Assembly: GCA_019828565.1 (NCBI GenBank)
Contig: JAHDYR010000064.1
Coordinates: 727,162 to 791,161 of the forward strand
Source of the DNA: Carpediemonas membranifera BICM
Taxonomy: Eukaryota > Protista > Fornicata
Direction: 5' to 3'
Length of the DNA stretch: 64,000 nucleotides
The position numbers were made by a program, and so were the translations under genes. A model generated the notes under the pieces. The model searched no databases, was not told the DNA's origin, and was given only the letters and a program-made list of their open reading frames with translations. The number at the start of each line of letters is the position of its first letter. Position 1 is the stretch's first letter. Below are positions 3,367-27,818 of the stretch, in pieces.

Positions 3367-3378
3367 GTGATCACTGTC

Positions 3379-4501
3379 ATGGTTTTAGTCAGCAACAGCC
3401 GTTTAGACGAGTATCGTCTTCATGTTGCAAGCAAAAAGCAGCCGTCTAGCATCCTCTTTTTCCTCGGGAGCGAGAAACTAGCCGAAATCCGCGCGGCGTT
3501 CATCCCGACAACGAGATTCCCAACATTCGAGGATTTCCAATGCTTCTTTGAGACAGAGATCCGTCCTCCCATTCATAAGCCTTCCGAGCAGAATGAACCC
3601 GAGAAGAACGACGACGACAAATCGGCCGAGGAGCTCAGCGCTCTCCTGGCCAAGCTCAAGGATATAGACACCCAAGCGGCCTCGATCGCTTCAGACGAGC
3701 TGAAGCAGGCCTTCATCACCGCAGCCCTCAAGGCGGTCAGTCCGCCACCGACGGCCCCAGACACCTCGACCAACGCCTCAGAGCGCCTCTCGAGGGAGGA
3801 GCTCCGCGAGCGGGCGGACCTCTTGCTCACCTACACCGCGTACTTCGAGCTGACACCCGCCCAGCGGGCCAACCCAGCCGCTCGCGCGGCGGCGATCCTG
3901 GAAAGGACCACGCTCACAGGTGGAGACATCACCTCTATGCAGAAGATGTTCCTAGCTTTCGGCAAGCACTGTCGCCAGCTGAACCCCAAGTTCCCGACAG
4001 AAGAAAACGGTTACACGCCCCTCACCGAGAAGAGGCTGATATCCACGCTTTTCCGCGTGCTGACCCGCGGTTTTGACGTCACCGAAGCCGCCCTCGCCTT
4101 CGAGGATTTCGCCGACGGCGCCACCACCATCGATGACGTCCAGCACCGCATCCTGGCTTTGCCAACTAACTCCGATGGGACGATCGTCACGCCTTGGTCC
4201 TTCTGCCAGAGGACCTCCGGTCCCATGGCAGGCGCCAAGGTCCCCGCTACACCGGGCAACGGCCGCAAGACCTGCCGCGTCCACGGTCCCGGCGGCCACT
4301 CTACTGAAGAGTGCCGGCTGCTGAAGCGCCAGAGTCAGGCTAACAGAGCCACACCGGCGGGCCGCCAACCTCAAGATCCCCGCCAGGGCCAGGCCTCTCA
4401 ACGCACACCACACCAAGCCTCAGCCGCCCAGCAGAACCAGTCACGCCAGCCGCAGGCAGTTGGTCCCCAACGACAGGCCGCTGGACAACCACAGCAGCCC
4501 C
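3379..4501 (+). CDS. Element B gag (N-terminal part of gag-pol; continues at 15173)
   Basis: ATG 12 nt after the LTR; CRVHGPGGHSTEEC zinc knuckle; frame restored to pol when 4502-15170 and one CC are removed. Confidence 0.85.
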
Positions 4502-5460
4502 CATACTGTAAGAATGGCTAGAGTCTCCCGGGAGATACTCTGGAGATACTCATGTGTCAACGCTGGTCAAACCTCGCGATCCAGGCGATCTCAGGCACCT
4601 CCAGAACATCTAGAAGGTAGTTATAGAAGCATAAAAGACATGTCTGGCGTCTTGAAGTATCACATGGTGTCAGTGTTGATAAAAGAGGATAACGCATTTT
4701 ATGTTGTAAATGTGAAGTGCTCGTTCGAACATGGGATCTTAACAGCGGTGTTTTATAGCTAATAGCAATGCCCTCTGAAGTTTTCAGCCTCCAGTATCTT
4801 CTACTTCCGTATGAATTAATGATTGAATCAGAGATTGAGAGAAATGAAGACTTCCCCACAAAAACCAAACATGGGGGGATAATCCATGGGGGTCAAGTAC
4901 TATCCGTACATACTCAGGTTCTGTGGGGAAGTCTTCATTTTCTCGCATTCGAAAAATCTGCAAAATTTTATCAACGATGAGATGGTCTTGGAAGATTGTG
5001 CTAACAACAGAGGTGTAACTAGATCAACAAAGGATCATGGAACCCTTGGTTTGTCCTAACGCCCGAAACAGTGCCCAAAGAGCTCGTGACACAGGTGAAC
5101 GCCAGAAAGAAATGAAGTTGCTCAGAGTGTACACCATATTGTCCTAGTTCCAATACTTTTTACCATTTTCTTCCAGCTGCTTTCGTTGGCGAGTTTCATT
5201 TTTTCTTACCGTTACTTCCGCAGTATCTTGCAAGATTCAGGGGGAAATTCAAATTCACTTTTCCTTTGAGGGCAAAGCAGAATTGCGCAATAACGCATCA
5301 ATGGGTATGAGAAGCATAGAATACGTATAAAACTCAGTGTAGTTGCTGCTCACAACTTTTTGGAGGAAACAGAGCAGCGGAAGCCCCAAACCAAAAATCT
5401 TTCACAAACTCTTGTGAAACTTGTGAAATGTGAAAGTGACTTCAGCAAAAATTCCTGAGC

Positions 5461-8010
5461 ATGCACATTGTCATACAGACCTTCATTGGCACTGTCTACG
5501 ACAATACTGGCCCTCCAAGGACTGCAGAGCGTATGAACTACATTCTCGCTCATACATACCTCTCCCTTGTTGGTATTGGCGGAAATACACAGGATCGAGG
5601 CCGCCAGCGCCGAGAATTCCGTGAACTCATCTTGGAAATGGCTAACCAGGGCCTATTTGCGGACATGGAGGTCGATCCGAGATTTTTCGCCGACCCGCAC
5701 GACTCTCGACCCTTCTTGCGTGCAGTACGTTCCCATAGAGGAGTCGCCCCGACCTTCGATGTCTTCGTACGTGACCACGCGCGTATTGCTGTCACCCACG
5801 AACGCTTGCGGAGACAGCACGAGGTCTCAACTGAGGAAACTGACAACTACAAGCAGATTTTGGAGCTTGTTTCTATCCTGATGTACATCAAGTCGGGTTG
5901 TAACGCAACCCATGAGCTCTTTAAGCTCATCCGTAGTCTTTCTGCGCGACTTCATATGCCAATCATCTCCAGCAAGGCTGCTGATATCTTCGTGAAGCAG
6001 TTGCAGGTCAATATCACCAAGATCAACGGCCTGGTTGCAGCGCTGACTAGACCAGAGGTTGCTTTCTTGGGTCATCTCGTCCCTGTGGAGTCTGTCACAG
6101 TCAACACGACCTGGCGGTGGGGCAGAAATGGCACAAAGTCGAGACTCGAGTGCACCAATCGCCTAACGGTGGACGAGGGTGTCGATATCCAGCCCCTGAC
6201 GGACGCGGAGAACGTCATTGACTTCAAGTGGGAGAAGCCAATGCTTGATCTTCACTACGAGACGAGCGATGAGGCCACAAGTCATCGCCCTGAGCTCAAG
6301 CAGACCCAGGGAGTCACCCTCGGCAAGCGGCTCAACAGCTCCACATGGGACAAGGTTGATCGAGTCTGGTTTGATGCCGTTCGTTACCTCAAGCAAGCTG
6401 TTCGCCACCCGGAATGGCTCGAGTCGGACCAGCCCAACTACGTTCGATGCAAGAACGCCCTTGGCAACAGGGTTGGAGTCACGTTTAGCCCCATGAAGAT
6501 CCTACTATGGCTTGACGGGTGGAAAGGGGGTTCTGCTGCCTTCAAGCTCCGCATCTACGACCCCACAGGCTTCACATTCCCCAACAAGATTACTCCACCT
6601 TTCCGTATAGTCGAGTATATGGGTAGCGAGGGTGATTTGTTGATGGAAGAGTCTCTTTCTCGCGTCGAGAAGGAGATTGAGCGCCTATACACGAGTCAGA
6701 TACCCATCAGAGACACTGGTGAGGTCACGATCTTCGACCATGTCATCGTCATGGGCGATCATGCCGCCCTCCGCCACATGCTGTCCAGAAAGTCGGGCCG
6801 GCCCAACTATCCACACCCTTGCAACACGATTTACCACAAAAGTAAGGCGCTCCACCCGATAGCAGGCCGCCATCGTCTCACCATCAAGGACAACCTGGAC
6901 GATAAGACAGCATACCAGGCTGAAGTCGACGACCCGAACCGAGTTCAAGATGTACTTGCAATCTATGGCGATTTCACCAATGAACGCATGGTATTCGAGA
7001 ATTGTAGTGTCATCCCTCTTGAGAAGATCGTCATATGCCCTCCATTCATGCACGACTCGCACCGTTTACTCGAGCAGGTTGCCCATATCTGTGGTTCTTT
7101 CAAGAAGCATCCCACCACCCGCGGGTCCCGCGAGGAGATCATCCAGAATAAGCTCCTCAACCTCAAGCTTGGCCGTATGTCGTCCATGCGAAGCATCGAT
7201 AGGACCGTAGGTTGTAACGAGCAGTCGTCCGCACGTGTAAGGATGGCTGCCACGACCAAGAGGACTACGTTGCTCTCCCTGAGTGCATTCAAGATATCAT
7301 TCGGCTCATTGGCTACCTCCAGGCCATGTACTACTCGTCCGAACCTGTGACTGACGCGGCTGTCGCGTTTCACTTCATGGCTGCCGCAGTGGCCCACCTC
7401 ATTCACGTCACGATTGCGTTCATTCCTAACAAGGATAAGACTTCCATATCCCTGCTATCAAGCAGCGAAGCGAAGACGAAGGAGAAACCGTGCGCTGAGA
7501 ACCTCTACAGCATCAGCAGACTCACGACGCAGCCCCTGTGCCACAAGCATCTCAAGGTGCCGCTGTTCTATATCCTAGAGGAGTACTTTGAGCGAGAGTT
7601 CATCAAGAACCAGGAGGTAGCAGCCAAGTTGCACAGGAAGGCAGTCCTTGAGGGCATTTGCTTGATCGAGCAGACAACTCTCGCGTGTTCCTTCCTGACG
7701 GGCATGCGTTCTTTTTGGTCGGCAGGACTACTCTGTCCCCCAGCTCCAGCGACTCAAGTGTGTGCGAGTTCACGACTGCTGTAAGGATGCGAAGCATTGG
7801 TTTGGTGTCCGCACACTGACCACCGTGACCTTCGAGCCAACTCGTGAGATGATCCAGACCTTTCAGGAGACTGTTGATGAAGTGTGGGAGTTTGTAGAAG
7901 AGCATACGACGCTGACGTGGGGTGAGGAGGGCACGATGTCATGCAGTCTGGCGGACCATGGCATAGAGTTAGTTTGCTGCCTGTGTGGAGAGTGTAGCAG
8001 ACAGAATTGA
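5461..8010 (+). CDS. Putative DDE transposase, CMC/Transib-like (spliced: probable intron about 7175-7224 and another near 7700-7725)
   Basis: Motifs in the expected order: LLWLDGW, VMGDHAAL...YPHPC, PPFMHD, LEEYFERE. Largest ORF inside the TIRs. Exon structure is inferred. Confidence 0.62.
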
Positions 8011-8240
8011 GGCATCCGCGTGATATAAAGTGATGTAAGATGGTTCCGTGATAAATTCATTCATTTTTCATATGTGCCACTTTTTTTCATGAATGGCACA
8101 TTTCACATTTCGCAGGTTTCACAAAAAGTTTGTGAAAATGAACCAAACGGGGAAAGAATCTTGGACAGAGGATACTCTTGCAGCCCATAAGGCTTATATA
8201 CAGTACGTAAGACTTTCTGATAAGTCAGACATCATCCCCA

Positions 8241-8882
8241 GTGTCCGTACGTTTTTTTAAGCAGGACGTTGCCACGAGAGGAGTTGATGACATCGATCAT
8301 CGCTTCTTCATGTTTGTTCACCCAGTGTTGCCCAGGTATTTACCCAGATTGGTTGCGATTCGTGACTGCAAGACTGATTCCATCATTTCGGCCTTGTTGC
8401 TCACGAAGGAGTCATACAACACCGAAGCTACTGATGAAACCCCTTCCGAGCTGCGCCAGGACTTATATGTTGTGGTTATTCGCACGGCATTCTATGCCAG
8501 GGGCAATGGTCTCGCCACGATTCTTCTTTCGGTTGCCTCTGCCGGACAGAGGATCCGCCTGCAGTGTGTAAGTTCTCTTGTGCCAGCCTACCAGCGTATG
8601 GGGATGTCCATCTCCAAGCAAAAGTCCACGATGGAGTACCTGGATGATGCGAAACTGGTGACCATGGAGGCAACATACGGCCCGAACAAGTGGACGAAGC
8701 TCGGTGAGAGTCTCGTTGCTTGCCATGGATATGCCATGAAGTCCTGGAGGGCTCCCCCGTCCGTCGACTACGGTACGGCTTTCACTTCTGTGGACCAGGT
8801 CCAGCCTCCCCCAAAGAGAACCCAAGCCACCCAACCCACCCCTGCCCACCAAGCCCTCGGACAAGCTCAACCGCTACATTAA
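8241..8882 (+). CDS. GNAT-family acetyltransferase (transposon cargo)
   Basis: Acetyl-CoA motif A VVIRTAFYARGNGLATILL; motif B LVPAYQRMG. Confidence 0.72.
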   Translation: MSVRFFKQDVATRGVDDIDHRFFMFVHPVLPRYLPRLVAIRDCKTDSIISALLLTKESYNTEATDETPSELRQDLYVVVIRTAFYARGNGLATILLSVASAGQRIRLQCVSSLVPAYQRMGMSISKQKSTMEYLDDAKLVTMEATYGPNKWTKLGESLVACHGYAMKSWRAPPSVDYGTAFTSVDQVQPPPKRTQATQPTPAHQALGQAQPLH

Positions 8883-9116
8883 GCGTCTGAGGAAGAGTGT
8901 TACCCCGCACCCGACGCGCAAGAAGCAACGTGAGATAATCATCGCCCTTTACGACAGCAACCGAAGGGATTTGGTCCAAAAGATCGTGGATAAGAGATCA
9001 AAGATGCGTAAGGATTACCAGAAAGAGAACTATTTCGAGGAAGAGTGGTACCATCTGCTGTCTGAGAAGGAAGATGAGGAAGAGAATGAAGATTAAATGA
9101 AGAAGCAGTCGATTTA

Positions 9117-9803
9117 TTACTCATTTGAGTTGACGTTAGCTGCGTGGAAGAGCAGGAGGCTCGCGTAAACGGGTATACGCAGAACATCACGAGCCTCTGC
9201 AGCGGCACGGGCAGCGTTCCTCTTCTCAATCACAGCGGCGAGGTCCTTGAAGGTCTTCGAGTGCTTCTTGAGGACAAGCTGCGGACGCTCGAAGATGAGC
9301 TTAGAGTCCTTGCGGCACACACTCTCCAGAAGGACCTCTCTGACCTTGTCGACAGAGATCCCAAGCCTCTGGGCGACGAAGGCGTAAGCGCGGGGGCGGA
9401 CCGACTGAGGGATGCCGTGGAACAGCTCGCGGTACTCACGGACAGTTGCCAAGAGAGGGCTGCCATGGTCGACCTCATCTCCTTCGGCGTCCAGGCTGAT
9501 GAGGGCCCTGAAGCGCTTCTCCTTGGCCTCAGAAGACTCGCCCTTGTACTGCGCCATGATCTGCTCAATGCTATCGAGAGAACGGAACTCCGCTTCATCC
9601 CTAAGATCCTCCGGAACGAATGTGGGGAGGTCATTGGGGCGTCTGTCAACCACCTCATTGCAAATGCGGTTTCCGGTGGCGACATCGGCAGCGGAGATGC
9701 TTCCAGCAGCGTGCTCCTTCTCTAAGTAAGTAGAAATCATTTCCACAGCGTTTAGACGCTTTCTGCCCTTGCTCTTAGCAGTATTACTCCGTTTCGGAGG
9801 CAT
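9117..9803 (-). CDS. Hypothetical nuclear protein with HTH-like segment (cargo)
   Basis: Basic NLS-like start MPPKRSNTAKSKGRKR; AFVAQRLGISVDKVREVL helix-turn-helix pattern. Confidence 0.5.
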   Translation of the reverse strand: MPPKRSNTAKSKGRKRLNAVEMISTYLEKEHAAGSISAADVATGNRICNEVVDRRPNDLPTFVPEDLRDEAEFRSLDSIEQIMAQYKGESSEAKEKRFRALISLDAEGDEVDHGSPLLATVREYRELFHGIPQSVRPRAYAFVAQRLGISVDKVREVLLESVCRKDSKLIFERPQLVLKKHSKTFKDLAAVIEKRNAARAAAEARDVLRIPVYASLLLFHAANVNSNE

Positions 9804-10332
9804 AACGTTTCTTCAAGGTGCACTTTATGCTCGCAACGAAATTAGAAACCAAACGAAGAAAGGAGAAGAGTATCGATCCTCAAACGCTGGCAAGCATGTG
9901 TATATCACTAAAACAACATCATGAGAGCTCTGTGGCCTCGAATGGCCTGTAATAGAACCTAAACAACATCAACAATTGTAACTCGTCGAGGAAGCGTTGA
10001 GATGAACTATAAACGCGGGAATGGATCAAACAATGGATTTAAGAGTGGCATACAAGGCCAGAATACCGCAATTATCGTCCGTTGATCCACGTGACCTCCA
10101 TCTTGGTCGGTATCCAGAGAAAGCCCTTCAGACGCTCGCAACACAACATTTAGAAGACTTATCGTGAATGGCTCCTTCCATGATGGACCTTCACCTGGAC
10201 ATGCCATCTCTGACATGTCCAATGGTCTCCATTGAGCTCGCATTCATCCCTCTGAGCATCCGCCCCATGGTCCAATCAGATGCCCAATCAAAAATTCTGC
10301 ACCGAAGTGCCCCGAGGACCTCCTCTTAGTTC

Positions 10333-10498
10333 ATAAGGCTCTCAGAGCCTTATACACCAATTCGAAATCGTGTATAAGGCTCTCAGAGCCTAATGAATCT
10401 CCCGCGCGCCGTTGCCTACTGATACTGGTCATTTTTCCGCATGGTTTATTAGGCTCTCAGAGCCTTATGAATTTTTCATTAGGTCCTGAGAGCCTTAT
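10333..10498. repeat. Four copies of a 21-bp palindrome ATAAGGCTCT-C-AGAGCCTTAT in a divergent intergenic region
   Basis: Copies at 10333-10353, 10374-10394, 10448-10468, 10478-10498. Confidence 0.9.
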
Positions 10499-10526
10499 AA
10501 TCATGCAATCGGTTTTCGACTTCTAC

Positions 10527-11877
10527 ATGCTCTTGAAGCGTTCGAAAACGTTTGGTAAGCAGTTCTTTATCTTCTATGACAGCGCTGAGATCAGTCAGGC
10601 CTCATCAAACGCGCAGGGAGATGATCAAGTGCTCACTTCTTCGTAAGTTCCTTCTGCCCGATGACAAGATCCTCACCGCCCTTCTTCGTGATCGTAAGTA
10701 CTTTCCCCATACCTTTTTACACAGATATTGGCTGGAAAACGCTTCGCAAGCTCTTCAGGTCGCCTCACCTTATCCTGCACCTAAGAGAAACTGCCGAGGC
10801 TCAGCTTGAGCTGATCACGACATCGGCTGAGCTGAAGAAGGTCATGGGAGATCATGCCTACGACAGCCTTGTCCAGAAGGTCCGCCGAGAAGTGTCTTCG
10901 GATCACGAGCACGACGTTGGAGGTAAGTACTCCAAATAACTCCTGCTTATTCAGTCCTTTCGCTGCTCCGTGAGCGCATAATGCGCAAGGTGAAGCCAGG
11001 AAGGTCGGGGGTCGTCCGTTCGTTCAAGAACAACGCCGAGCCTGAGCTGTCGGACCCGGTCGACGTGCAGTTCGACCGGATAAGGCACCTGGACGCGCTT
11101 CTGATGGACTCTCCCGTCCACAGAAGTACCCTGAGTGGCACATCGCGCCTCCTGCGCCGCCATCTTGCCGTGGAACACAACGGTGCGATCCGTGATTTGA
11201 AGAGGGAGCTTTGGCAAGCCCGGGCCAAGATTGAAAAGCTCGAGACGGAGAAGCTTGTGCCCTTGAAGAAGGAGGCTGAGGTCATAGACCTGGATCGGGA
11301 GGCTTTGGTGGCCGCAGACCCCAAAGATGACGTCCAGACCATCATGGAGAAGACCTCTAAGAAGTTTAAGAACGATACAAGCTCTCTGAAGCGGTCTGAG
11401 GTGCCTGGGGATGGCTCATGCATTCTCAGCGCCATGCATCTCATCAGGACTGGGTCCCAGCCTACTGTTGGTGAGAAGCTTCAGCTGTACGAGGACATCC
11501 GATCCTTCTGTGAGGGCAAGGGGTTCGAGGGCGACCCGTTCTCTGAGATGCCTGGCTCCCCTTTCCCCTGGGCAGACCATGAGGCCATCCAGGCCAGTGT
11601 AGAGCTGAGTCACACTCCGGTAATCATCACCCAGATCGACGAGGACCTTACCTGCCTCTGGGTCCACAAAGGTTGGGAAGATTCAGAGTTCTTGCCCATC
11701 CAGGATGCGACGCTGGACAAGATCTTAGGTCTTTGTGAGAGCATGAAGCTCACTCAGTTCATCGTCATCGAGAATCGTCATGCCTGTGTCTACAGTCTTC
11801 CGGACCGCAAGCGCAAGGCAGCTGCCGCAGAGCCCGAGAAGCGTGCTACTCGTCCGGAGGATGTCACCCGCTCATAA
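10527..11877 (+). CDS. OTU-like cysteine protease/deubiquitinase with coiled coil (cargo; 5' exons inferred from several GTAAG...AG mini-introns, main ORF 10981-11877)
   Basis: EVPGDGSCILSAM (OTU Cys box), WADHEAIQA, ENRHAC (His box). Confidence 0.72.
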
Positions 11878-11950
11878 ATGATTGATTGAATTGATATCTC
11901 TTCAAGTTTATTCACTCTTGCCTTGAGTCATGCGCGCAGTGTGGAAGCGC

Positions 11951-12859
11951 TTACGGGCGGGGTTGGACTTGGTCTTCCGCTTGCGGGGCTGCGGCTTGAC
12001 CTGCAGTATTTTTGAACTGCTCCACCTTTCGAGCGAGGTAGTGAGGGTCATCTATGGCGAGACTCTTGAAGCGAGCAACCGGGTGCTCCTCTTCATCGGC
12101 CTCAAAGTAGGTCTCGCCATAATCGATGCGCAAGAACTCGCCGCGAACGATGTTGGCAGTGGCCCTGACCGATATCACTGGCAGGCCATCCACCAAGACG
12201 TCCACGAACTCACAGTTGACATCGTCAGGGCTGTGGTTAATCAGGTGGACACCCGCTGTGGCCGACATGGCATCGACGGCGACCTGACTGTCAGCGAATG
12301 ACATGCTGTGTAATGGTAATGGAATATGCGAAACAAACACCATCTGGCCGTTGTTGCTGGCCGTCTCAGCATCGGGAATCAGCTTCCCGAAGTATATGCC
12401 GAGACATGTGCCAGCTGAGATATCCTCAGTGGCAATCATGCCTCGGCCGACGCTCTGCGTCCGATTGAGGGCCGGATGGTCGGGCTCCTGGGTCAGACGG
12501 GGGTCGCAACGGGTCTCGGATGAGATCCAGGCCGGAGCAGGAATGGCCTGAAGGCTTATCTCATCCGAAATCAGCCGCTTGACGTCCTGCAGGTCTGAAC
12601 CCGGGTAAACATGCGTCCACCTAGGGTGGACGTGCATGACGGACCCCTCGACGGAGTCCTCCTCGGCTTCAGACGAGCTGGATGAATGGGAAGGCGACTC
12701 GGGAGGCGGAGGAGGAGGTGATGCTGCCGTTACAGTCGTTTCCGCAGGACGTTGATCCTGCGGAGAAGCAGATGACTCAAAAGTCTTGTTGGGTGGATTT
12801 TGAGTCCTTCTCTTACCTACCGGTTGCTGCTTCCTTGCGGACATCTTTCTTCTCGCCAT
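11951..12859 (-). CDS. SET-domain lysine methyltransferase (cargo)
   Basis: GRGMIATEDISAG...YFG, LINHS...NC, RATANIVRGEFLRIDYG. Confidence 0.9.
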   Translation of the reverse strand: MARRKMSARKQQPVGKRRTQNPPNKTFESSASPQDQRPAETTVTAASPPPPPPESPSHSSSSSEAEEDSVEGSVMHVHPRWTHVYPGSDLQDVKRLISDEISLQAIPAPAWISSETRCDPRLTQEPDHPALNRTQSVGRGMIATEDISAGTCLGIYFGKLIPDAETASNNGQMVFVSHIPLPLHSMSFADSQVAVDAMSATAGVHLINHSPDDVNCEFVDVLVDGLPVISVRATANIVRGEFLRIDYGETYFEADEEEHPVARFKSLAIDDPHYLARKVEQFKNTAGQAAAPQAEDQVQPRP

Positions 12860-13055
12860 ATCTTCGTTCTCTTTTTTTTTCTCGCAACTCCCGATCCGAA
12901 GAACAGGCGCATCGCTGATCAGATCCGAACAATACTGCAGTAGCATGCATAAATAGTGTAGCAATGAAGGTATACCTCTTTACTTGGATCAAAAAGCTTG
13001 TCCTTTGCTTCAAATCAAAATGTGCCATTCATGAAAAAAAAATGGCACATTGCAA

Positions 13056-13910
13056 ATGGACGAGAAATACGGAGAATTCGGCACGCGACGCATCAGTAAG
13101 GACCAAGAAGTCTTTGAATGTGTCTGTGGTAAGGTTCAGCTCAGGCGTGGACATCGCGGGATCGGTTTCAAGTCTTCTTCCTCTCACGAGTGTCCTTTTA
13201 CAACAGAGAAGTTGATTAACCGACGGGTGCTAATCACCATCGAGCCGCTGCATGGTTTCGAGACCCCGACTCAGCCCTACCCCGTCTTCCGCGTGGAAAG
13301 TCTTGCCAACTCATCTGGCTATCATTTCAAGCTCAAGACGGCTCTAGAGCTCGTTGATGATGAGTGGCTGACTGCCGTTGCCCGCACCTTTAAGTCTACG
13401 TCCCATCTGGCCGAGGTACTTGAGGAGTTGGCGTCGCAGTACTCTAACTTCGACACTTACTGGGTGATATCGGGTCATTCTGATACAGAAACGTCGCGTA
13501 TGATCATTGATACGTCTACGAACGAGTTTCTGTATCACCATGATCTGGTCCAGCTCATCCTCAGGTCATTCGAGAGCCCTTCCTTGGTGAGATCGACGCG
13601 TGTGCGTCTGATTTACTTTGCCACCTGCTCCGGACTCGACAGATCTGAGGAGTCTCAGCTGTGCAGTGCTATTTCGACAGCCAAGTACAAGAACACATGC
13701 ATTATCCTCACTCCTGAGAAGGTTCTGGCGCATGAGCTTGTTCTCCAGGACGCCTATTGGCTCTACCGCGTGACATGCCTCGACAATCCTCTTTTTCTTT
13801 CTGACGAAGTACTTCTCTGGCTATCGTTTCGCGCCTGGCTCAGCAGGAAGACGGATTATAGCCAATGGTTCCTTGTCATTTCCCAACGAGGCCAGGGTCA
13901 TCATGTCTGA
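13056..13910 (+). CDS. Putative caspase-fold (clan CD, CHAT-like) peptidase (cargo)
   Basis: Strand-His WVISGHS followed about 50 aa later by strand-Cys LIYFATCSG. Confidence 0.5.
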   Translation: MDEKYGEFGTRRISKDQEVFECVCGKVQLRRGHRGIGFKSSSSHECPFTTEKLINRRVLITIEPLHGFETPTQPYPVFRVESLANSSGYHFKLKTALELVDDEWLTAVARTFKSTSHLAEVLEELASQYSNFDTYWVISGHSDTETSRMIIDTSTNEFLYHHDLVQLILRSFESPSLVRSTRVRLIYFATCSGLDRSEESQLCSAISTAKYKNTCIILTPEKVLAHELVLQDAYWLYRVTCLDNPLFLSDEVLLWLSFRAWLSRKTDYSQWFLVISQRGQGHHV

Positions 13911-14104
13911 GACTAGCTATGCCCGGCCCATTCCTCTTCCTGAAATGCAAGACATCGTTTCTGATGTCAACGAGTATGACCCGTTAAGAACCGACCAGAG
14001 AAGACTTATGAATGATCGATACATAAGCATGATGACCCGTGCGCTTGAGAGAGACGTGTAGTAAACAGATATATATACAATTTATGATCATCTCTCACTA
14101 AACA

Positions 14105-15004
14105 CTAAACAATCGGTCTCATGCCCTCTACTCGCTTATAGACAACCTTACATTTGCTGCAGAGGGGAACGATGTACAACTTGCCATCAATGGTGTACTG
14201 CACTTCCTCAGAGCAATGCTCACAGTACCACCAGTGACAGCCTCGGCAGCAAAGAAGAGTAGAAGCCTGTTCTTCTGCTTTCTTCGTGTTCTTGGATCTT
14301 AGGCCCTTTTTGCACGCCTGGCACTTGTTGCTAGAGCCGGTAATATAGCACGCGGGACAGTAGTCCTTCTTGCCCTTCGTCCTGACACATTGCTCGTGCA
14401 GGAAACCTTTGCAAGCACAGCATCTCCTGAACGTAGTGCCGTCTGGATTGAAGAACCACTCGGGGGTACCACACACAAGACATCCAAATAGCATTTTGCG
14501 CTGATGAAGGCTAAGGAAAGTCGTCTTACATGTCTCGGGTTCGGTAGGCGGGTCTCTCACACGGGTCTCTGAGACAACGTCGTTGATCAGGACCTTAATA
14601 CGGTCAACAACAGCATCGGACACGTTGTTAGACACCTGCTGCAGATCGTCGTCACCAAGCCTGGGTCGCTTGGCTTCCTCGTCGTCAAAGACGATCTTCT
14701 TCCGAACCGGCACCGATCGATCTGTCGTTGACTGAGGTGTGTCTGCTTCATCACCAACACCAAGTGAAGACAGTTGCGTAGTCGACCGTATCGGTGGGAT
14801 CTCTGCATTGATCATCGTAGTCGGGGTCGATTTGACCGTTGCCTTTTGCTTGACAGGCTTATATCTCACCCGGTTGATCACAGGCAAGTTCTCAAGGCTG
14901 ATTGAGTCGGAAACATCGTTCAGTCCAGCATCTGAGAGAACTTCTGAGAGCATCTGGCGGAACTCGGCATGGCAGGGCTGACTACGGACAGCAATGTGCT
15001 GCAT
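14105..15004 (-). CDS. Tandem PHD/zinc-finger protein (cargo)
   Basis: CLVC...CCAC...LHEQC...YCPAC (C4HC3) followed by a second Cys-rich finger. Confidence 0.8.
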   Translation of the reverse strand: MQHIAVRSQPCHAEFRQMLSEVLSDAGLNDVSDSISLENLPVINRVRYKPVKQKATVKSTPTTMINAEIPPIRSTTQLSSLGVGDEADTPQSTTDRSVPVRKKIVFDDEEAKRPRLGDDDLQQVSNNVSDAVVDRIKVLINDVVSETRVRDPPTEPETCKTTFLSLHQRKMLFGCLVCGTPEWFFNPDGTTFRRCCACKGFLHEQCVRTKGKKDYCPACYITGSSNKCQACKKGLRSKNTKKAEEQASTLLCCRGCHWWYCEHCSEEVQYTIDGKLYIVPLCSKCKVVYKRVEGMRPIV

Positions 15005-15172
15005 GACAGAGCCATTGTACTCCGCAGAGGGTCTAACTGCTGTTATAAACGTAGTAACGCCGACAACAGTCGTCCGCCTGACCTGTTCCCGGAGTTCAAT
15101 TGACTTGAACCCAGGGCATTCGGCGGCGACCCTGCGCTGGACCTATCGATCTAGCCATTCTTACAGTATGCC

Positions 15173-18100
15173 AGCAACCATCGACGTCGAAGGGTCCTTG
15201 GCAGTTCAGGCAGAACCCCAAGCAGGCCACACCATTCACACCGACACCCCCCAACAAGCCCCAACAAGGCAGCGTTCAGAACGTAGAGCATGCCGAGCAC
15301 GCTTACTCGCCGGGCCGGCTTCTCCGGATTCCAGTGACGATAGGTGACACGCTTATCTCAGCGACGGTCGACCCTGGCTCCGTAGTGTCCACCATCTCGC
15401 TGGACCTCGCCAACGCACTCGCCCAGTTTGGCAGGAGGGGCCCCGACATGGTCCAGCTGACGGGCCCTGACGACCAAGGTCTCCAGCAACACGGCACCTT
15501 CGAGACAACGCTGGTCGCGGACCGCTTGGGCGACCGCCGAACGATCATCGATTGGCCCCTGCACGTCATCAGCGGCAGGGCCGATAAGGTCCTCATCGGC
15601 TCGGATATATTGTGGTTCTTAGGCCTCATGTCCGACGAGGGCATCATGCTTCGCCTCCGCCCGCAAGTTCACGACGGCGAGGACGAAGGCCTCCCCGACG
15701 ACCAGACCGATGACTTCCACGCAGTCAACAACATCGTCAGCGACGACGCGGGCCCACTTGGCACACGCATCGCAAGCGACTTCCCGCTCAAAGCCGAGAT
15801 GGCTGATGTCATCCGCCGGCACGCACCGGTATTCGGCGAGCTGCACCCTGACGGCGCCCAGATCGCCGCCGCAACGATTGACATCGTGCCAGGCGCACCC
15901 CTACCCAACCATGCCCCTCGACCGCTCACGGCATCCACCGCCGAAAGAGTGCACGAGATTATCGACGACATGGACAGACAGGGCATCGTACGCGATTCCT
16001 ACAGCCACGTGGCATCCGCAGCCGTCATCGTAGTGAAGAAGTCAAGCGAGTTACGACTTTGCGCCGACTACCGCGAGCTTAACTCGGTAACTACACCAGA
16101 CAGGTTCCCCCTCGCAGATATCCGCACCTTCACCAACGACTTCATCGGTGCCAAGTACTTCTTCGCTTGTGACCTCCGGTCAGGTTTTCATCAAATGCCA
16201 GTACGCGAAGACCACAAGTACCTCACCGCTATAACGCTGCCAGGCCGGTTCAAAGAGTACAACTTTGCACCCTTTGGTCTTCGTAACCTACCGTCACAGT
16301 TCCAGCGGGCCATCCAGGCAATCCTTGCCCCTGTGCGCGCCGACGGTACGAAGAACTACATCGATGACATCTTTGGTCGAGCCAAGACACCTCAGGAGCT
16401 TCTAGACCACGTCGACCGCCTACTCTGTATCGCAGAGGAACGCAACGTCCGCCTCCGCGGCGACAAGTGTGTCTTCGGGGCGACGTCTATCGAGATCCTC
16501 GGCGATATCGTCGATGGCAAGGGCCGCCGCATGAGCCCTACTCGTGTCAGATCCATGCAGGACCTCGCCGCACCTCACTCGGTCAAGGACCTACGCATGA
16601 TCATCGGTATGTTCACATACCTCAGTGACTATATCCCCGACTGCCAGACACGCCTCAAGCCGCTCCAGGCCTTGGTCAGCAAGGTCCCACCCTACACCTT
16701 CAACGACTGGGACGACACGCTTCAGGCTCTGTTTGATCAGCTCAAGCAGGCCGTGACAGACGAAGAGGTCCTCGCCCATCCGGACCAGAGCAGGCCCTGG
16801 CGCCTCGAGACCGACGCCTCTCTCGAAGGCATCGGCGGTGTCTTACTGCAGCTTGACTCGGACAACACATGGCGCGTCGTGTCATTCTTCTCAAAGGTCT
16901 TCAACGACACACAGTCGCGTTGGTGCACGTACGACCAGGAGCTGTTCGCGATCATCTACTGCCTCACTCGGCCTGACCTCTCGCCCATCTTTAGAGTCCA
17001 CCAGGACCTGACGATCTGGACGGACCACCGCAACTTGGTCTACCTGCACTCCAAGGCTGGCCAGGAAAACCGTAAGCACCTCCGCTGGCTGCTTATGATC
17101 CAAGAGTTCGAGTTCGTCATCAGACACATCGCAGGCGTGCAGAACACACTGGCCGACGCACTCAGTCGATACAACCCGCAGGCCACAGTCACGCAGGTCA
17201 ACAACGTCTCAGAGGCCGAGCTCGACGAAGACGCCAAGCGCAAGATCGTGCAAGAAGCTCACCGATACCACGAGGGCGAGCAGGCCACCATCAGGAACGT
17301 CCGCCAGCTTGGGCACGATTGGCCAGGCCTCCACTCCGACGTGCACGCAGTCGTGTCAACCTGCGTGTACTGCGCTAAGGCACGCCTCTCCGCTTTCATT
17401 AAGACCACAACGCAGTCTTCTCTGCGCGACCGACCCTTCCAGACCATCGCTGTAGACACCATGGGTCCTTTCCCTGTCGACTCCGAGGGTTTCAGATACA
17501 TCGTGGTGGCAACCGACATGTTTACCCGCTTCACGGAGCTCATCCCCACAGCTTCCAACAACGCGACGACGGTCGGGCTGGCACTTTGGTCCATCATCGG
17601 ACGCTACGGTGTGCCTCGCGAGTTCCTTTTCGGACAACGGCCCCGAGTACCGCAATCGGATGATAGAAGCTTTCCTTGATCGCTTGCAGGTCACGTACCA
17701 CCGGACAATCCCTTTCCACCCTCAGTCAAACGGCCTGGCCGAGAGACGCAACCAGGAAGTCAAGCGACACTTACGTGTGCTCTGTCTGATGTTTGACCGT
17801 TACGACGCCTGGGCCTCCGTGATCCCATACGTCCAGTACATCCTGAACACTACGGTCCACTCCGTCACCGGCGTCGAACCCATTGCTCTCTTGATGGGCA
17901 AGCATGCCTCCGCTCGCGACTTCACGATCGCACCCAAGGAGGAGGGTAGAGTTCATACTCCCCTGGACGACATAGCCTCCTACATCGACGCGCTCACCGA
18001 GCACCTCCAGATCCTCGCCGACCAGGCCCTCAACCGCCAGCAGGCAATGACAAGGACCGCAGAGCCGACGCCCCCGATCGAGCCGGGCACTCTGGTCCTT

Positions 18101-18509: not shown

Positions 18510-20606
18510 GATGGCCGGGATGCCGTGGCGGCAGATAGACGCCCAGATAGCGGCGGCAGCCGCGTCTGCATTGTTCGAGGGGGCTGGCACGAGCTCAGTA
18601 AAGTGCGTGAATGTGTCAGTAATCACGACGACATACCGGTTGCCGGCCGAGTCCTCTGAGATGGGGCCGAGCGTGTCGACGGCTACGCGTTCGAATGGTG
18701 TGCTGCTCGGGGTCGCGCCCATCTTCAGCTTGATGAAGTTCGCCAGACGGGTCTTCTGACAGATCAAACAGGCGTTGATCAGGTCGGATACGGTGTGTTC
18801 GAGCTGTGGCCAGTCGTAACCCAAGTCACGCACGGCCTGAGCGGTCTTCTTGACGCCCAAGTGCAGCCGGTGGGCCTCGGCTAGGACGTCGCGACGCGCG
18901 TCGGCGGGTACGAATGTGCGACCGTGATACTTGACGACACCGTTGACGATGGTGTGCTTGGAGGGTCTCTCGTCAGCGTGCTCCTTCTGAGAGGCGAGCA
19001 CTCTCGACTCTAGCGTGTTAGCCGTGACCTCGGCGATCTCTGCGGGGCGGGTCTGGAAAGGGAAACGGCTTAAGAAGTCGGCCGTGACGTTGGACTCGCC
19101 CGGGACGTGGTGGATCTTGAGTCTGAACTCCAAGAACGACAGTAGCCATCGGCGATGCTTCCGATTGTGAGCGGCCATGCGGTGGAGTGCCATCAGATTC
19201 TTATGGTCGGTGAACACGGTCAGATCGGGGTGGCCCAGGAAGAGAGAGTACATGTCAGGACGTGTCAGACAGTATATCAGAGCATACATCTCCTGGTCGT
19301 AGGTGCTCCATCTTTGTTGAATGTCCGAGAACGCCTTGGAGAAGTAGGCGACGACTCTCCAGTCTGTGGGCGTTTGCTGTTGTAGGAGTATGCCGCCTAG
19401 GCCGAGGAGACTAGCGTCCGTCTCGAGGCGCCAGGGTTTGGAGAGGTCTGGTATGGCGAGTGACTCCTCAGAGGCGAGCTGTGTCAGAACAGCCGCGATA
19501 GCCTCTTGGTGTGCTGAAGTCCACACGACCTTGGCGTCCTTGCGGAGGAGGCCATTGATGGGCGCTAGGATGCGCTGGCAGTCAGGGATAAAATCTGCCA
19601 CGTAGTTGATGTGGCCGAGGATCTGACGTACCTCGTGCGTGGTCGTCGGGCGTGGGAGGCTCTTGATCGTGTCAATGCGTGAGGGCTGAGGGCGACGACC
19701 GTGTTCGGAGACGATCTCGCCGAGACAGTCGAGAGTCTGGTAGCCAAAATGACACTTCTCGGCGCGCAGCCTGATGTTCTTGTCACTGAGTAGAGCGAGC
19801 GTGCGCTGGGTGCGCATGACGAGTACCTCGGGCGATGGCGCGCCAGCAAAGATGTCGTCTATGTAGTTCCTGACGCCCTCTGAGTATACCGGGCGCAGGA
19901 CGTTGGCGATGGCCCGCTGGAATTGTGCGGGGAGGTTCTTTAGGCCAAACGGGGCGACCATATATTCGAAAAACTCGCCCGGGACCCGCACCGCAGACAG
20001 GTAACGGTGGGCATCCTTCAATGGCATCTGGTGAAACCCTTGGCGAAGGTCTAGACCGAAGAAGTACTTGCTGCCGACGAGGTCCTTGATGAGCGTGCGG
20101 GTATCTGTCATGGGGAAAGCGTCAGTCACAGTTGCCTCGTTGAGGGCCCTGTAGTCTGCGCAAAGTCGTAGTGGGCGGCGTCCGTCCGCGTCGGGCTTCT
20201 TCTGGACAATCACAGCCGGGCTAGAGACTGGGCCGTGTGCGTCGCGGATGAGCTGGGCTTCGTACATTTCATGGAGCTGTCGCTTGATCTCGGGAAGCCA
20301 GTCAGCGCGGATGCCGCGTGGGTTGGCTTGTGGCAGAATGGCGTCCGGCTTCAGGTCAATGGTGGCTTCCGCGATGTCGGCGCCGCCGAGAGGCAGCTTG
20401 GGGTCGAAGACGTCGGCGTTGGCCTGGAGCACAGCGAGTAGCTCGTCGTGTAGAGGGAACGAGGGGTCAATGTCGAAGGTTGGCGTGGCGAAGGACGAGA
20501 CGTCGTCCGGCAGGTCGTCAGTCTCCGAGTCAACCTCGTCGATGTATTGATTCTGGGCCGGTGTGACATCGTCGGCGGGGTCCTCCGCTGACGGTGGTAG
20601 CTGAAT
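18510..20606 (-). CDS. Element A1 pol middle section: RT, RNase H, integrase N-terminal half
   Basis: LRLCADYRALN, YIDD, LETDAS, TDHKNL, HLG...CLIC, VAVDTLGP. Joins 25132 (GINI|QLPP) and 3313 (HGIPAI|LHTD). Confidence 0.93.
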
Positions 20607-20682
20607 TGTCACAGCATCTCCCTCACTCCCAGTGCACTTTAAGGTAAATGGATTTCCCCGTTTTCTGCTGCCATCCGGCACA
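20607..20682 (+). repeat. Family C 5' LTR (76 bp)
   Basis: tgtcacagc...ggcaca, identical to 25056-25131. Confidence 0.95.
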
Positions 20683-20699: not shown

Positions 20700-23600
20700 A
20701 TGGTAACGCAGAATCATCTGTTCCTATCTGATCTAGATCCTGTTACGATCAGAACCTTCACTCGGCACTTCCGAGTCCTCAAAGCCCAATTTCCAACTCT
20801 TTCGCCATCCGACTGTATTTCAGAAGAGATTCTTGATGTCCTTGAGCTTCGATATGAAGTTGATCTCTCTTCCGCAACCATTGAAGATATCGAGGCTTCT
20901 CTCCTCACGCACCTCCTACCTCCAACACTCAATGGATGCCTCCGAGCAATGCGTGCCCTCCAGATGCCTAATCACGACAACAAGCTTCACTCGATCCTCT
21001 TGTACGTCCGAGAGCTCCGTGCGCTCTACAAGCACGCTCTAACGTTCATCCCCGACCACGACCCGCCCAAGCCTGAAGCTGATGATGACGACCCCGACGT
21101 AGACGCTCTCGCTGAGCTACTGGGCTCCTCGCCATCCGGGCCTAGCCCCGCTCATCGGGGCCTGAGCAAGGTCGCCGCCCGTGTACTCCTCGCCGCCATC
21201 AGGCCAAGTGAGCTTCAAGCTCGCCTCAAGACCGAGGTCGAGCGCCTCCAGGCGCTGGCAAGCGATCTGGCAGGCCTCGACATCTCGTCTTTGACACCGT
21301 CCACCACGTCAGCTGCCGTGTTGACCTCCGTTGACCGCCCTCGCCAAGGTGGCGGGCAGAGCCGCCAAGGCCGCCCCGCCATAGGCCGAACACATGGGCT
21401 CCCGGCCACACCCTCCAAGACCCCCTGCCCATTCTGTGGTGGTTGGCATTGGAGGTGGCAGTGCCCTAAGGCCGACGCCGCCCAGCGAGGCTCCACCCAG
21501 CAGTCCAACCAGTCGCCGCACCCGGCACAACCGACCGGCCAGCATGACAAGCAACAGCCACATACCCAAGCCCGACATACTTCGGGCAACGCCAACCGCC
21601 AGCTGCCAGTGCCTCAACCAAATGCGGATCCCACTCAGCAGTCCGACCGCCGCGCTGGTAGGATGAACCTCCGCCCCAGCAGCACCCTCAAGAAGGGAAG
21701 ACCAGTGCATGAGACCGCCCATGCCCAGCCGGTGCAGTCTGTCGACGAACCACAGCCCGACTCATCCTACTTCACCGTCCAAGGGAAAGTCAATGGCGAG
21801 ACGCAGACAATCCTGATTGATTCCGGTTCCGCCCCAAGCTGTATTTCGCAGTTGTTGGCCGAGCGCCTCAAGGCCACGATCGACACATCCGTCTCAATTG
21901 CTCTGTTGGACGTCAATAAGCAGCTTTTTTATGACGAAGGGCGTAGCAAAGGTGAGTCTGAGCCTTCCATCTGCGGGCAACGCCATGGTCACTACCGAGG
22001 CCACCTTCCACGTAATAGAACGCGACGATGATCACATACTCGTTGGTTGTGATATCCTCAGAGCTCTTGGCTTCCTCAGCGCCAAGGGCCTCTTCGTCCC
22101 TACAGGCGTCGACTGCAACGAAGACCCCCAGACCACCGAAGGGCTCCATCCCCACAAGTACCTAGACCCAGTCCCTGTCGCTGAAGCCTCAGCTGCTCCA
22201 CAGTTCTTCAGCGATGAAGTGGACGTATGTCCTGATCAACTACACGACCCTATCCGTGAGATCCTCCGCAAGCATGACGCCGTGTTCGATCCAAACCTCC
22301 CCGAAGAGCCGGCAGCCTTCCCCCCCATGACCATCCCGACCGACGGCTACATTGTCAACATGAAGCCACGCCCTCTGGCTCCAGCCAAGACGGAGTGGCT
22401 GCACGATCATGTCTCAGACTTACGCGACAAGGGCATCACCGAGGCCAACACCGGCCCATATGCCAGTCCAGTAGTCCTCGTGCGAAAGGGGGACGCTTGG
22501 CGGCTTTGCATCGACTATGTCCTACTCAACAGCCACACCACCCGTGATCGACACCCCCTCCCCAACATGCGCGAGTTCCTTCGCCGAGCAAGTGGGTGCG
22601 ACCGATTTGCCGCCCTGGACCTGACCTCAGGCTATTGGCAGGTGCCTATGGCTGACGAGGACAAGGAGAAGACCGCGTTCATCGCCCCTGGCGTGCATGA
22701 ACAGTTCACCAGGATGCCTTTTGGGCTTGCCAATGCCCCGTCGCATTTCCAGCGAGGTATCGAGACTATCCTCGGGCCCATCCTCCATAAGGGGGTTGAC
22801 CCGTACATCGATGACCTCTTCATGTACTCCTCCGAGGAACTTTTCCTCAAGCTTCTCGATGACACCCTCACTCGCCTGGAAGAAGCCAACGTCCGCCTAG
22901 GCGCAAAGAAGTGCCGAATAGGCTATTCCGAGGCCCCCATAGTTGGTTTCATTGTCGACAAGGCTGGAGTTCACGTAGACCCTGAGCGCACCCGCGCCCT
23001 ACGAGAGCTTCCCCTCCCCACTGATGTCCACGGGCTCAGGACCGTGCTCGGCAAGTTCCAGTTCTTAGCCTCATTCATCTCAGAGAAACGCCATGAGCTG
23101 TTCAAGCCCCTTACCGCTCTCCTAGAGAAGGACGCCGTCTTCAGCTTCGGCCCAGCCGAGACTGAGGCTTTCAACACCCTTAAGTCCCTCTTCACCGATG
23201 ACCTCTTCATCGCTCACCCAGACTTGTCCCTTCCTTGGACCCTCGAGACCGACGCTTCCAATGTCGGAGCCGGAGGTGTACTCTACCAGACTCCCAACGA
23301 CAACTCGGGCAGACAAGTGCTGGCCTATTTCTCTCATACGTTCACCCCCACCCAGACCAGATGGGCTACCTGCGAACAGGAACTTTTCGCCATCGTATAC
23401 GCCTTCACGCACCCCTCCCTCACCCACCTTCTGCGCGTGAAGCATGTAACCCTCAGAACAGACCACCGTAATCTGATCTACATGATCTACAAGTCCGCGA
23501 CGAACGACAAGATCCTCCGCTGGCGTCTGACGCTAGCCGACTTCAACTTTGAAATCACACACGTTCCCGGGAAGGATAACGTCATAGCTGATTCGCTCAG

Positions 23601-25091: not shown

Positions 25092-25131
25092 GGTAAATGG
25101 ATTTCCCCGTTTTCTGCTGCCATCCGGCACA
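25056..25131 (+). repeat. Family C 3' LTR (76 bp)
   Basis: Identical to the 5' LTR; contains the pol stop codon. Confidence 0.95.
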
Positions 25132-27007: not shown

Positions 27008-27024
27008 AGGGAGTGATTAATCAC

Positions 27025-27077
27025 TGTGGCGTAAACGACGGGTATTCGAGAATTCGTTTTAATCAGGTGATGCGTCA
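27025..27077 (-). repeat. Family A 5' LTR of copy A1 (53 bp)
   Basis: Identical to 2412-2464. Confidence 0.95.
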
Positions 27078-27818
27078 GTCAGAGCGTGTGTCGAGAAGAA
27101 CCCCCAGATACTGGATAAGCTGGACGGGGTCGAGCTCGCTCTTCTTAAGGTTCACGATGATGCCGAGGAGCTGAAGGGTCCTGAGCACCTCCGGTCCAAT
27201 TGACCGAAGATAGGCTTGGTCCGCATGGGCCAGAAGAAAGTCGTCCAGGTAGACACTTACCTTCACCTTGAAGCGCAGCGCTAGGATCTTTGCGGCTTGT
27301 ACCATCACCAGCTGAAAGAAGTACGGGGCGGCGGTCCACCCGAACGAGAGGCCGGTGTAATGGTACGCTTGGCCGTTGGGAAGAACCACGCCCAAGAGTG
27401 GCGCGTCCTGGGGCTTCACGCCGAGCTGGTGATAGCCGTCGGACAGATCTATCTTGACCATGAAGTCGTTTTCGGACAGCAGCCCCACCGCTCGTCTCAC
27501 CCCGAAGAGGCGGAAGACTTGACGCTGTCTTGGGATGGAGTTGAGGCGTCGTAAGTCGTGAATGACCCGGATGTCGTTCTCGCCCTTGGCAACGGAGAAG
27601 AGAGGGGCGCTGTGGCGGAGCTTGCGTGTAGAGGACTTGACTAGAGCACCAGAGGCGAGCTGGTCTTTGAGCTTTGCTAGGATCTTGCGGTCGATTGTGG
27701 CCTGCGGAGCTGGAGGTGACGGAGACCCGTTGATGTGAATCGGTATCCCCTGGCGGAGGAGGTTGCAGACCTCGTGGGATGCGCCGAACCGTTTCCAAAC
27801 GAACGATCGCGCGTTCAT
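27078..27818 (-). CDS. Reverse transcriptase of a DIRS-like (tyrosine-recombinase class) retroelement, interrupted by A1
   Basis: LFSVAK...RVIHDLRRLN, KIDLSDGYHQ, LSFGWTAAP, YLDDFL, NLKKSELDP, YLG; overlapping ORFs as in DIRS. Confidence 0.85.

Follow-up and report, generated by a model that had tools for sequence, protein, structure and literature searches.

What kind of element places a long transposase-like open reading frame (ORF) and six further ORFs inside the gag-pol gene of a gypsy retroelement, and do these genes belong together? The question is raised by positions 4502 to 15170 of a 64-kb window of Carpediemonas membranifera (assembly GCA_019828565.1), where the window is the whole stretch of DNA analyzed and coordinates without a label are window positions. 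An earlier note on this DNA had proposed a DNA transposon carrying chromatin-related genes as cargo. The unit probably represents an autonomous cut-and-paste DNA transposon family with a transposase of the RAG1/Transib fold and a conserved accessory module, the window holding an internally deleted copy. The seven-gene unit moves as one piece through an insertion that depends on terminal inverted repeats (TIRs) and duplicates 2 bp, and it has moved recently: a comparison of three copies shows substitutions in only 25 columns.

The boundaries of the unit and the gene that it interrupts are the following:
3367–4501, plus strand: gag part of the host gypsy element, split by the insertion and resuming at 15173–17679
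4500–4501: left copy of the target-site duplication (TSD), CC; excision of one CC with the element restores the gypsy frame
4502–4551, plus strand: left TIR, of which 21 nt pair perfectly with the right end here; about 50 nt in full copies
15145–15149: deletion junction with the 5-nt filler ATCGA, placed by comparison with the full copy at locus L001
15150–15170, minus strand: right TIR, the terminal 21 nt remaining
15171–15172: right copy of the TSD, CC, placed by sequence and frame restoration

The perfect 21-bp TIRs with CC on both sides that the earlier note had described are present: the arms 4502–4522 and 15150–15170 are 100% complementary over 21 nt and are flanked by CC at 4500–4501 and 15171–15172. 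With up to 3 mismatches allowed, the 21-mer occurs in the 64 kb at these two sites alone (chance expectation 0). The left TIR starts with 5'-CATACTGT and has two subterminal repeats, GGAGATACTC, inside. Excision of 4502–15172 joins 3367–4501 to 15173–17679 in a single frame of 1213 codons, in agreement with the claim that excision restores gag-pol. This frame reads ...GQPQQPQQPSTSKGPW... across the junction (in a longer reading, ...QPQQPQQPSTSKGPW...) and continues with protease, reverse transcriptase, RNase H and integrase; it is broken when both copies of CC are retained. Because excision with one CC restores the frame, the insertion into the gypsy gene is exact and the duplication is 2 bp long.

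Word-based homologue searches returned almost exclusively C. membranifera copies, and the sole match of the 629-aa window ORF among 5.8 billion proteins is a hypothetical protein of this organism. Tracing annotated paralogues to the contigs of GCA_019828565.1 located four more loci of the same family, termed family A. At locus L001 a full copy measures 11,353 bp and is flanked by GG, and at L003 one of 11,309 bp is flanked by TT, while the copy at L002 is rearranged and L004 contains a 3' fragment; none of the flanks of these four loci is shared with the window. The transposon bounded by TIRs and TSDs that had been predicted, with other copies in different 2-bp duplications, is thereby found in further full TIR-bounded copies, the absence of which had been named among the arguments against it. 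Annotation records the caspase-like gene of family A at least 8 times, spread over at least 7 contigs. Copies of the family are about 99.5% identical, and 34 of the 38 one-base indels among the three compared copies lie in homopolymers of at least 3 nt. These homopolymer indels, together with the few substitutions, indicate that the copies are very young and that the frameshifts are probably artefacts of long-read consensus error. Given how little the copies differ, the element may be active to this day.

A full family-A element measures about 11.3 kb and has a TIR of about 50 nt. The size of 10.7 kb given in the earlier note holds for the window copy and not for the family, the window copy being a deletion derivative in which 620 bp present in L001 are gone just inside the right TIR. 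This deletion removes the promoter and the first ~60 codons of the PHD/FYVE gene. A second loss of 51 bp, at 12692, affects the N-terminal region of the SET gene. At L002 (7078–15766), the OTU and SET segments of the family-A copy are duplicated internally. From 15767 onward the terminus of another family (CATACTGTCAACATCC...) cuts this copy, followed by the zinc-finger and transposase genes of that family; the lineage thus inserts into itself. Gypsy pol sequences lie within a few kilobases of every examined family-A copy (L001, L002, L003 and L004), and two elements, those of the window and of L005, are situated inside gypsy genes, which may reflect target preference or survivorship.

A second family, B, is represented by a full element at L010 (663–12792; 12,130 bp) with a perfect 40-nt TIR (40 of 40 positions) starting with CATACTGTTAGAATGG and the TSD CG. 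Its seven genes agree with those of family A in order and strand at 29 to 57% amino acid identity, and the DNA of the two families can be aligned in only two short stretches. An element from a second eukaryote assembly, GCA_002919055.1, occupies L005 2171–13799 (11,629 bp), with a 74-nt TIR starting with CATACTGCCC and the TSD GC. It splits a gypsy pol gene, of which residues 673–973 and 970–1193 abut its two ends. Other C. membranifera families start with CATACTGTCAA... or CATACTGTGAA.... The terminus CATACTG is found in all families seen, and this terminal, heptamer-sized block is the only part of the TIR conserved between families. Occurrences of CATACTG at L007 713, L002 16707 and L008 12729 share their flanks and were rejected as termini; they belong to an internal repeat.

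Five independent full insertions each show matching dinucleotides (CC, GG, TT, CG and GC), which chance would produce with a probability of about (1/16)^5; the duplication comprises 2 bp of any sequence. The lineage comprises several diverged families in C. membranifera and extends to the second eukaryote assembly and to metagenome contigs. A tree of the transposases contains two well-supported clades, and since each of them mixes C. membranifera with other sources, it points to an old diversification or to horizontal transfer. Two loci show additional genes. At L006 782–3863 (GCA_002919055.1), RCC1/WD40-like and protein-kinase genes lie between a PHD/FYVE-like fragment and a block of OTU, SET, caspase and transposase genes, and are either extra cargo or host DNA between two elements. 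At L008 13670–21792, two outward-facing CATACTGTGAAAG termini surround 8 kb with a Dam-like methyltransferase gene (weak Pfam match) and a reverse-transcriptase gene, apparently one of the adenine-methyltransferase retroelements reported for Carpediemonadida.

Between the TIRs of the window copy, the seven genes are arranged as follows:
5461–8010, plus strand: transposase gene, about 850 aa, predicted RAG1/Transib fold (family alignment, AlphaFold2 model, Foldseek)
8211–8882, plus strand: GNAT-like acetyltransferase ORF (motifs and hhalign to the GNATs of related elements)
9117–9803, minus strand: 228-aa basic protein with a possible helix-turn-helix (HTH) at residues 143–160 (weak Pfam matches)
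10981–11877, plus strand: OTU-like cysteine protease, GDGSC ... H267 (three-family profile and motif)
11951–12859, minus strand: SET-domain lysine methyltransferase, ATG at 12859 (mechanical ORF to 12964)
13056–13910, plus strand: predicted cysteine protease of the caspase fold (clan CD-like), with a CxC..HxC zinc knuckle at the N terminus (AlphaFold2 and Foldseek)
14105–15142, minus strand: PHD-like and FYVE-like double zinc-finger protein, 5'-truncated here, 407 aa in full copies

The transposase frame of the window lies in three pieces, 5461–7260, 7257–7715 and 7714–8007, and the breaks are single-base homopolymer indels. Frameshifted pieces were not joined but searched singly, or an intact copy was used; the transposase is represented by the 716-aa open piece of L003. 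The protein has no sequence match in Pfam, NCBIfam or the PDB, the latter searched with the single protein and with a profile at E ≤ 10, where the profile returned noise. None of the 14 transposase members of alignment A1 matches a Pfam family. An exhaustive HMMER search of 1.84 billion representative proteins gave 21 matches, the two weakest of which look spurious; most of the matches come from C. membranifera, and GCA_002919055.1 and a small number of metagenome contigs supply the other true ones. A scan of a prokaryotic genome collection with the transposase of GCA_002919055.1 gave no match, as expected for a eukaryote.

The assignment to an enzyme class comes from conserved residues and a structure model. 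In A1, D219 (W-x-D-G/A-W) and D300 (G/A-D-H/N-K/P-A) are invariant, and E454 (R-T-x-G-C-N-E-Q) is present in 13 of the 14 members. The AlphaFold2 model has a mean predicted local distance difference test score (pLDDT) of 84.2 and a predicted template modelling score (pTM) of 0.82. D219 is located on strand 212–221, D300 directly follows strand 292–299, the fourth of the core, and E454 opens helix 453–467, a placement that in the model is the Asp-Asp-Glu (DDE) geometry of an RNase H-like fold. All 49 Foldseek matches to the PDB at E ≤ 1e-3 are RAG1, the amphioxus RAG-like protein (BbRAGL) or the Helicoverpa Transib transposase (HzTransib). The best of them is the RAG1 core, with E 2.6e-9 over about 690 aligned columns, and the next match has a probability of 0.21. 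Structures of the Hermes, piggyBac, P-element, Mos1 and Tn5 types are not among the significant matches. To our knowledge, structures of CACTA, Mirage and Chapaev transposases are absent from the PDB, and the lineage may therefore stand nearer either to Transib or to those groups. The DDE-type ORF of the earlier note is thus specified by the model as a DDE enzyme of the RAG1/Transib fold.

The accessory genes recur beside transposases that are only 22 to 30% identical to that of the window, in at least three sources. The caspase-like proteins of the window and L005 match with E 1e-23, and iterated profiles recover SET, caspase-like and PHD-like genes in L005, L006, L007, L008, L010, L012 and L013. 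The set shared in the lineage consists of the PHD- and FYVE-like zinc-finger protein, the SET protein, the caspase-fold protease, the OTU-like protease and GNAT. Because they travel with such diverged transposases, the accessory genes form an old conserved core module and are not recent captures. Six ORFs do lie where the earlier note had placed them, but its term "cargo" is misleading for core genes that are conserved at 22 to 57% identity across families and organisms.

SET alone exceeds the cut-off in Pfam and NCBIfam scans of all window ORFs (Pfam E 4.5e-11; score 43.5 bits, cut-off 22.4), and the call is firm at the level of sequence. Among solved structures, KMT5A/SETD8 and LegAS4, an effector secreted by Legionella, are the nearest relatives, at about 2e-7. 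The Asn of the NHS motif (N208) and the catalytic Tyr (Y247) are invariant in four families. At L013 4340–5644, minus strand, the usual place of the PHD/FYVE gene is taken by a gene for 435 aa, the N-terminal half of which resembles SET (Pfam SET E 9e-4), and the same contig has a second SET-like gene. The GNAT-like protein keeps motif A (RGNGLA) and motif B (Y..MGM) in family B. A profile of families A and B matches the GNATs of L012 and L013 with an hhalign probability of 91% and E 9.5e-7; these adjoin transposase homologues and pass the Acetyltransf_7 cut-off of 27 bits with 36.5 and 31.4. Through this transitive homology the window protein is a candidate GNAT, in line with the earlier call.

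The calls for the OTU, GNAT, HTH and PHD proteins are based on profiles and motifs, and structure models were made for the transposase and the caspase-like protein. A three-sequence profile of the OTU-like protein aligns with OTUD3 (E 7.6e-4) with the GDGNC motifs in register; D144, G145, C147 and H267 are invariant, and the matches of the profile reach L008, L010 and L012. Its weaker matches are the OTU domains of nairovirus L proteins. The ORF itself has no match to Pfam OTU at E < 0.1, and the assignment, although it agrees with the earlier note, is marginal. The caspase-like protein was modelled as the 334-aa form P0039, relative to which the C terminus encoded in the window is frameshifted. 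Foldseek places the model with caspase-11, -4 and -8, SAVED-CHAT, MALT1 and CED-3 (best E 2.7e-6; 142 matches at E ≤ 1e-3), and the residues G140-H141, after strand 133–140, and C191, after strand 183–190, are all invariant. No Pfam Peptidase_C14 match was obtained, and PDB sequence searches with the single protein or a profile gave only noise; the caspase fold, also named in the earlier note, is supported by the model.

The zinc-finger protein contains a candidate PHD finger of the C4HC3 pattern: C283, C286, C303, C306, H311 and C314 do not vary, and 5 of 6 sequences have the closing C-x2-C pair. Its profile matches PHD fingers with E 0.0026 to 0.05, mostly H3K4me3 readers (BPTF, DIDO1, PHF2, TAF3 and PHF8), and the family B protein reaches E 0.015 with PHD_4, below the cut-off. 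The second finger matches FYVE domains (profile E 2.7e-4); the PHD of the earlier note would be the first finger. A PDB sequence search with the single protein returned nothing useful. No Kelch or other Pfam domain was detected in the protein, the N-terminal half of which shows little conservation and has gaps in the alignment. In four other families the transposase gene has the homologue as its immediate neighbour on the opposite strand, and the gene is present in every family with enough sequence except L013. The basic protein at 9117–9803 is 36% identical to the family B gene in the same position, and its HTH call, also made in the earlier note, is only suggestive: three Pfam models match the same 18 residues, all of them below threshold.

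Two repeat features lie between the genes:
10330–10500: cluster of 25- to 34-nt palindromic repeats with the core AAGGCTCTCAGAGCCTTA, in the intergenic region between the HTH and OTU genes
8081–8103 and 13018–13040: perfect 23-nt inverted repeat TTTTTTTCATGAATGGCACATTT

Element copies differ in the palindrome cluster by one 41-nt unit, and the cluster may be a regulatory or protein-binding array. One arm of the 23-nt repeat lies a short way upstream of the GNAT-like gene and the other in the gap that separates the divergent SET and caspase-like genes, and the repeat may serve as a shared promoter element. Beyond two local inverted repeats, no motif shared upstream of all seven genes was found. 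In the surroundings of the element, further gypsy pol fragments occur at 18516–20618 (minus strand), 21940–24174 (plus strand) and 25103–25519 (minus strand), 27 to 42% identical to the interrupted gypsy. These additional fragments mark a nested region rich in transposable elements (TEs), for which the earlier expression "TE pile" is fair. A direct repeat of 146 nt, 99% identical, at 1980–2124 and 26939–27084, 25 kb apart, is the sole long one in the window.

Among known systems, the Transib and RAG-like elements (RAGL/ProtoRAG and AanRAGL) resemble the element in the whole-length fold of the transposase (RAG1 core, BbRAGL and HzTransib). The heptamer of the RAG recombination signal sequence is CACAGTG, with which CATACTG agrees at 5 of 7 positions. 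In contrast to Transib and RAG, the element has a TSD of 2 bp instead of 5 bp, its terminus has only CA..TG in common with 5'-CAC(A/T/G)GTG, and its transposase shows neither detectable sequence similarity nor the C(2)C zinc motif. RAG-like transposons of the alga Aureococcus have a two-gene RAG1L/RAG2L arrangement (PMC9435367), which resembles the PHD-type finger gene that lies, often divergently, beside the transposase gene of the element. The element differs from this arrangement in that its partner protein has no detected Kelch and in its five further conserved genes. The CMCT clade comprises EnSpm/CACTA, Mirage, Chapaev and Transib together with Plavaka, ESTA and Lanisha, and some fungal families of CMCT/KDZ elements carry a TET/JBP dioxygenase (PMC12730594). 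Shared with this clade are the CA..TG ends, a TSD within 2 to 5 bp, a similarity to RAG1 that appears by structure-aware comparison only, and the presence of an epigenetic enzyme in a DNA transposon; the element differs in lacking the C(2)C and H(3-4)H signature and the Pfam matches of the group, in having six accessory genes instead of one, and in its metamonad host. With Mirage, compared by description, the 2-bp TSD is the only common trait known here.

Accessory genes presumed to affect silencing or ubiquitin-like modifiers are also carried by VANDAL/MULE elements (VANC, Ulp1; VANDAL is cited in preprint 10.64898/2026.05.21.726589) and by Helitrons (OTU). Their transposases are unrelated (Mutator DDE and HUH/helicase), and they carry single accessory domains and no conserved set of writer, reader and protease. 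Carpediemonadida carry DAM retroelement genes (10.64898/2026.05.21.726589), and DAM-LTR, EpiLTR and chromovirus elements likewise combine several chromatin- or DNA-modification domains in one mobile unit. These retrotransposons are RNA-mediated and have the domains fused into pol, whereas the element has separate genes, moves by cut-and-paste and encodes enzymes of families that modify proteins and not DNA. The earlier note knew of no described element with the full set, and in the literature on C. membranifera TEs, Transib/Chapaev, protist RAG1-like transposases, Lanisha and SET+OTU+PHD transposons, neither the element nor its gene set was found described.

Several results weigh against an autonomous transposon with a RAG1/Transib-fold transposase and an intact module. 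A fully open transposase frame is present in none of the assembled copies. The Foldseek superpositions have template modelling scores of 0.41 to 0.56 and a root-mean-square deviation of about 12 Å, the single domains matching while their relative arrangement superposes poorly. Zinc motifs of the forms C(2)C and H(3-4)H, listed for EnSpm, Mirage, Chapaev, Transib and RAG1 (Kojima 2025, PMC12730594) and shared by RAG1, Transib and CACTA-type enzymes, are not conserved in A1, where D300 is followed by the consensus GGxYPxPF with at most one Cys and E454 is preceded by MHxSH, that is, H-x2-H, in 11 of 14 members. The 2-bp TSD also departs from the Transib/RAG pattern. The GNAT-like protein of the window has no Pfam match and its best PDB match, a GNAT, has E 0.16; the caspase-like model, built from four sequences, has a mean pLDDT of 59.5 with 70 to 89 in the core; and the HTH rests on the sub-threshold matches to Sigma70_r3 (0.054), MerR (0.12) and wHTH (0.18). 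The comparison of nonsynonymous (dN) and synonymous (dS) divergence that the earlier note had suggested gave dN < dS between families A and B for the five genes with estimable dS (the PHD-FYVE gene is not estimable), but dS is saturated between the families and the ratio is qualitative only.

The lineage might instead be a divergent member of a named CMC/CMCT group with a 2-bp TSD, such as Mirage, in which case the RAG1 match would arise because the PDB has no structures of CACTA, Mirage or Chapaev. The group has CA..TG termini and TSDs of 2 to 5 bp, both of which the element shows, and HHpred ties such transposases to RAG1 (Kojima 2025, PMC12730594). Membership is nevertheless unlikely, as is the corresponding account of the fold match: the Pfam models Transposase_21, RAG1, Plavaka and KDZ match none of the 14 members, the HMMER search over 1.84 billion representatives yielded no named taxon other than C. 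membranifera, and the group-defining C(2)C motif is missing, with Mirage and Chapaev known here by description and not from reference sequences. That the six genes are host passengers acquired by transduplication and decaying neutrally is highly improbable and already contradicted. Every window ORF has some assembly defect, be it a frameshift or the truncation of the PHD gene, as decay would produce, but the indels lie mostly in homopolymers and are probably errors, and the gene set persists at 29 to 57% amino acid identity where the DNA is unalignable, in family B with order and strands as well. Homologues stand beside the diverged transposases of other assemblies, the catalytic residues are invariant, and word-based searches found no C. 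membranifera SET or caspase-like paralogue outside these elements. A Polinton-like or virus-like element was rejected, as no polymerase, capsid or packaging ATPase was seen and TSD and TIRs follow the pattern of a DDE element.

A different role for the module is conceivable even if the transposon itself is accepted. Conflict systems and viruses often contain OTU proteases, clan CD proteases and GNATs, and the accessory enzymes might be virus-like factors of counter-defence or host manipulation acting on non-histone host proteins, the OTU protease stripping ubiquitin-like modifiers, the caspase-fold protease cutting host factors, and GNAT and SET modifying restriction factors. The nairovirus matches of the OTU profile, the bacterial defence protease SAVED-CHAT among the fold matches beside caspases, and the Legionella effector among the SET relatives agree with such a role, and the second finger is closer to FYVE lipid binders (E 3e-4) than the first is to PHD (E 3e-3). 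Against this stand the combination of SET, PHD and GNAT, which is most economically chromatin-related, the predominance of histone H3K4me3 readers among the PHD-like matches, and the tight linkage of the zinc-finger gene to the transposase gene. Counter-defence or host manipulation is a possible but less probable explanation. A still bolder proposal, and quite an unlikely one, takes the RAG1-fold transposase and the adjacent PHD-type partner as a chromatin-gated recombinase like RAG1-RAG2, for which SET, GNAT and OTU would write and erase the marks that the partner reads.

For the preferred reading, an autonomous transposon with a conserved accessory module, a mechanism can be outlined. Transposition would follow the RAG/Transib route, with a nick at the CA end, a subsequent hairpin on the flanking DNA, and strand transfer with a 2-nt stagger. 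Judging by their conserved residues, the SET, OTU-like, caspase-fold and GNAT-like enzymes look catalytically intact, and the accessory proteins may constitute a co-evolving module needed for the persistence of the element. The zinc-finger protein would preferably be regarded as a cofactor that tethers the transposase to chromatin or lipid, comparable in function to the PHD of RAG2. SET, GNAT and OTU could add or remove marks on proteins, either histones or the transposition machinery, and such marks might, as a hypothesis, control where or whether the element is expressed and inserted. The chromatin remodelling at the element's own locus that the earlier note had suggested would be one form of this hypothesis.

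The DDE cut-and-paste class to which the element belongs is known; new are the sequence-orphan transposase of the RAG1/Transib fold with its 2-bp TSD and an unprecedented conserved multi-enzyme module. The set of RAG1/Transib-fold enzymes gains a lineage from a deep-branching anaerobic protist that has a 2-bp stagger and lacks the usual zinc motif, which bears on the age and plasticity of the fold. Most DDE transposons encode one or two proteins, whereas in this lineage as many as six additional ones, among them a methyl and an acetyl writer, a pair of cysteine proteases and a reader-type finger, have been retained across deep divergence. How transposons manage host chromatin or host defences thereby becomes testable with defined genes. 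If the chromatin-gated recombinase were true, the element would carry a complete write-read-cut circuit marking its own copies or preferred targets in TE-rich chromatin, kept since before several Carpediemonas-like lineages diverged, and the recombinase would be either independently evolved or very distantly related to RAG1-RAG2. Canonical DNA-replication and segregation proteins are reportedly absent from C. membranifera, and given that absence the chromatin and TE biology of this host is of wider interest.

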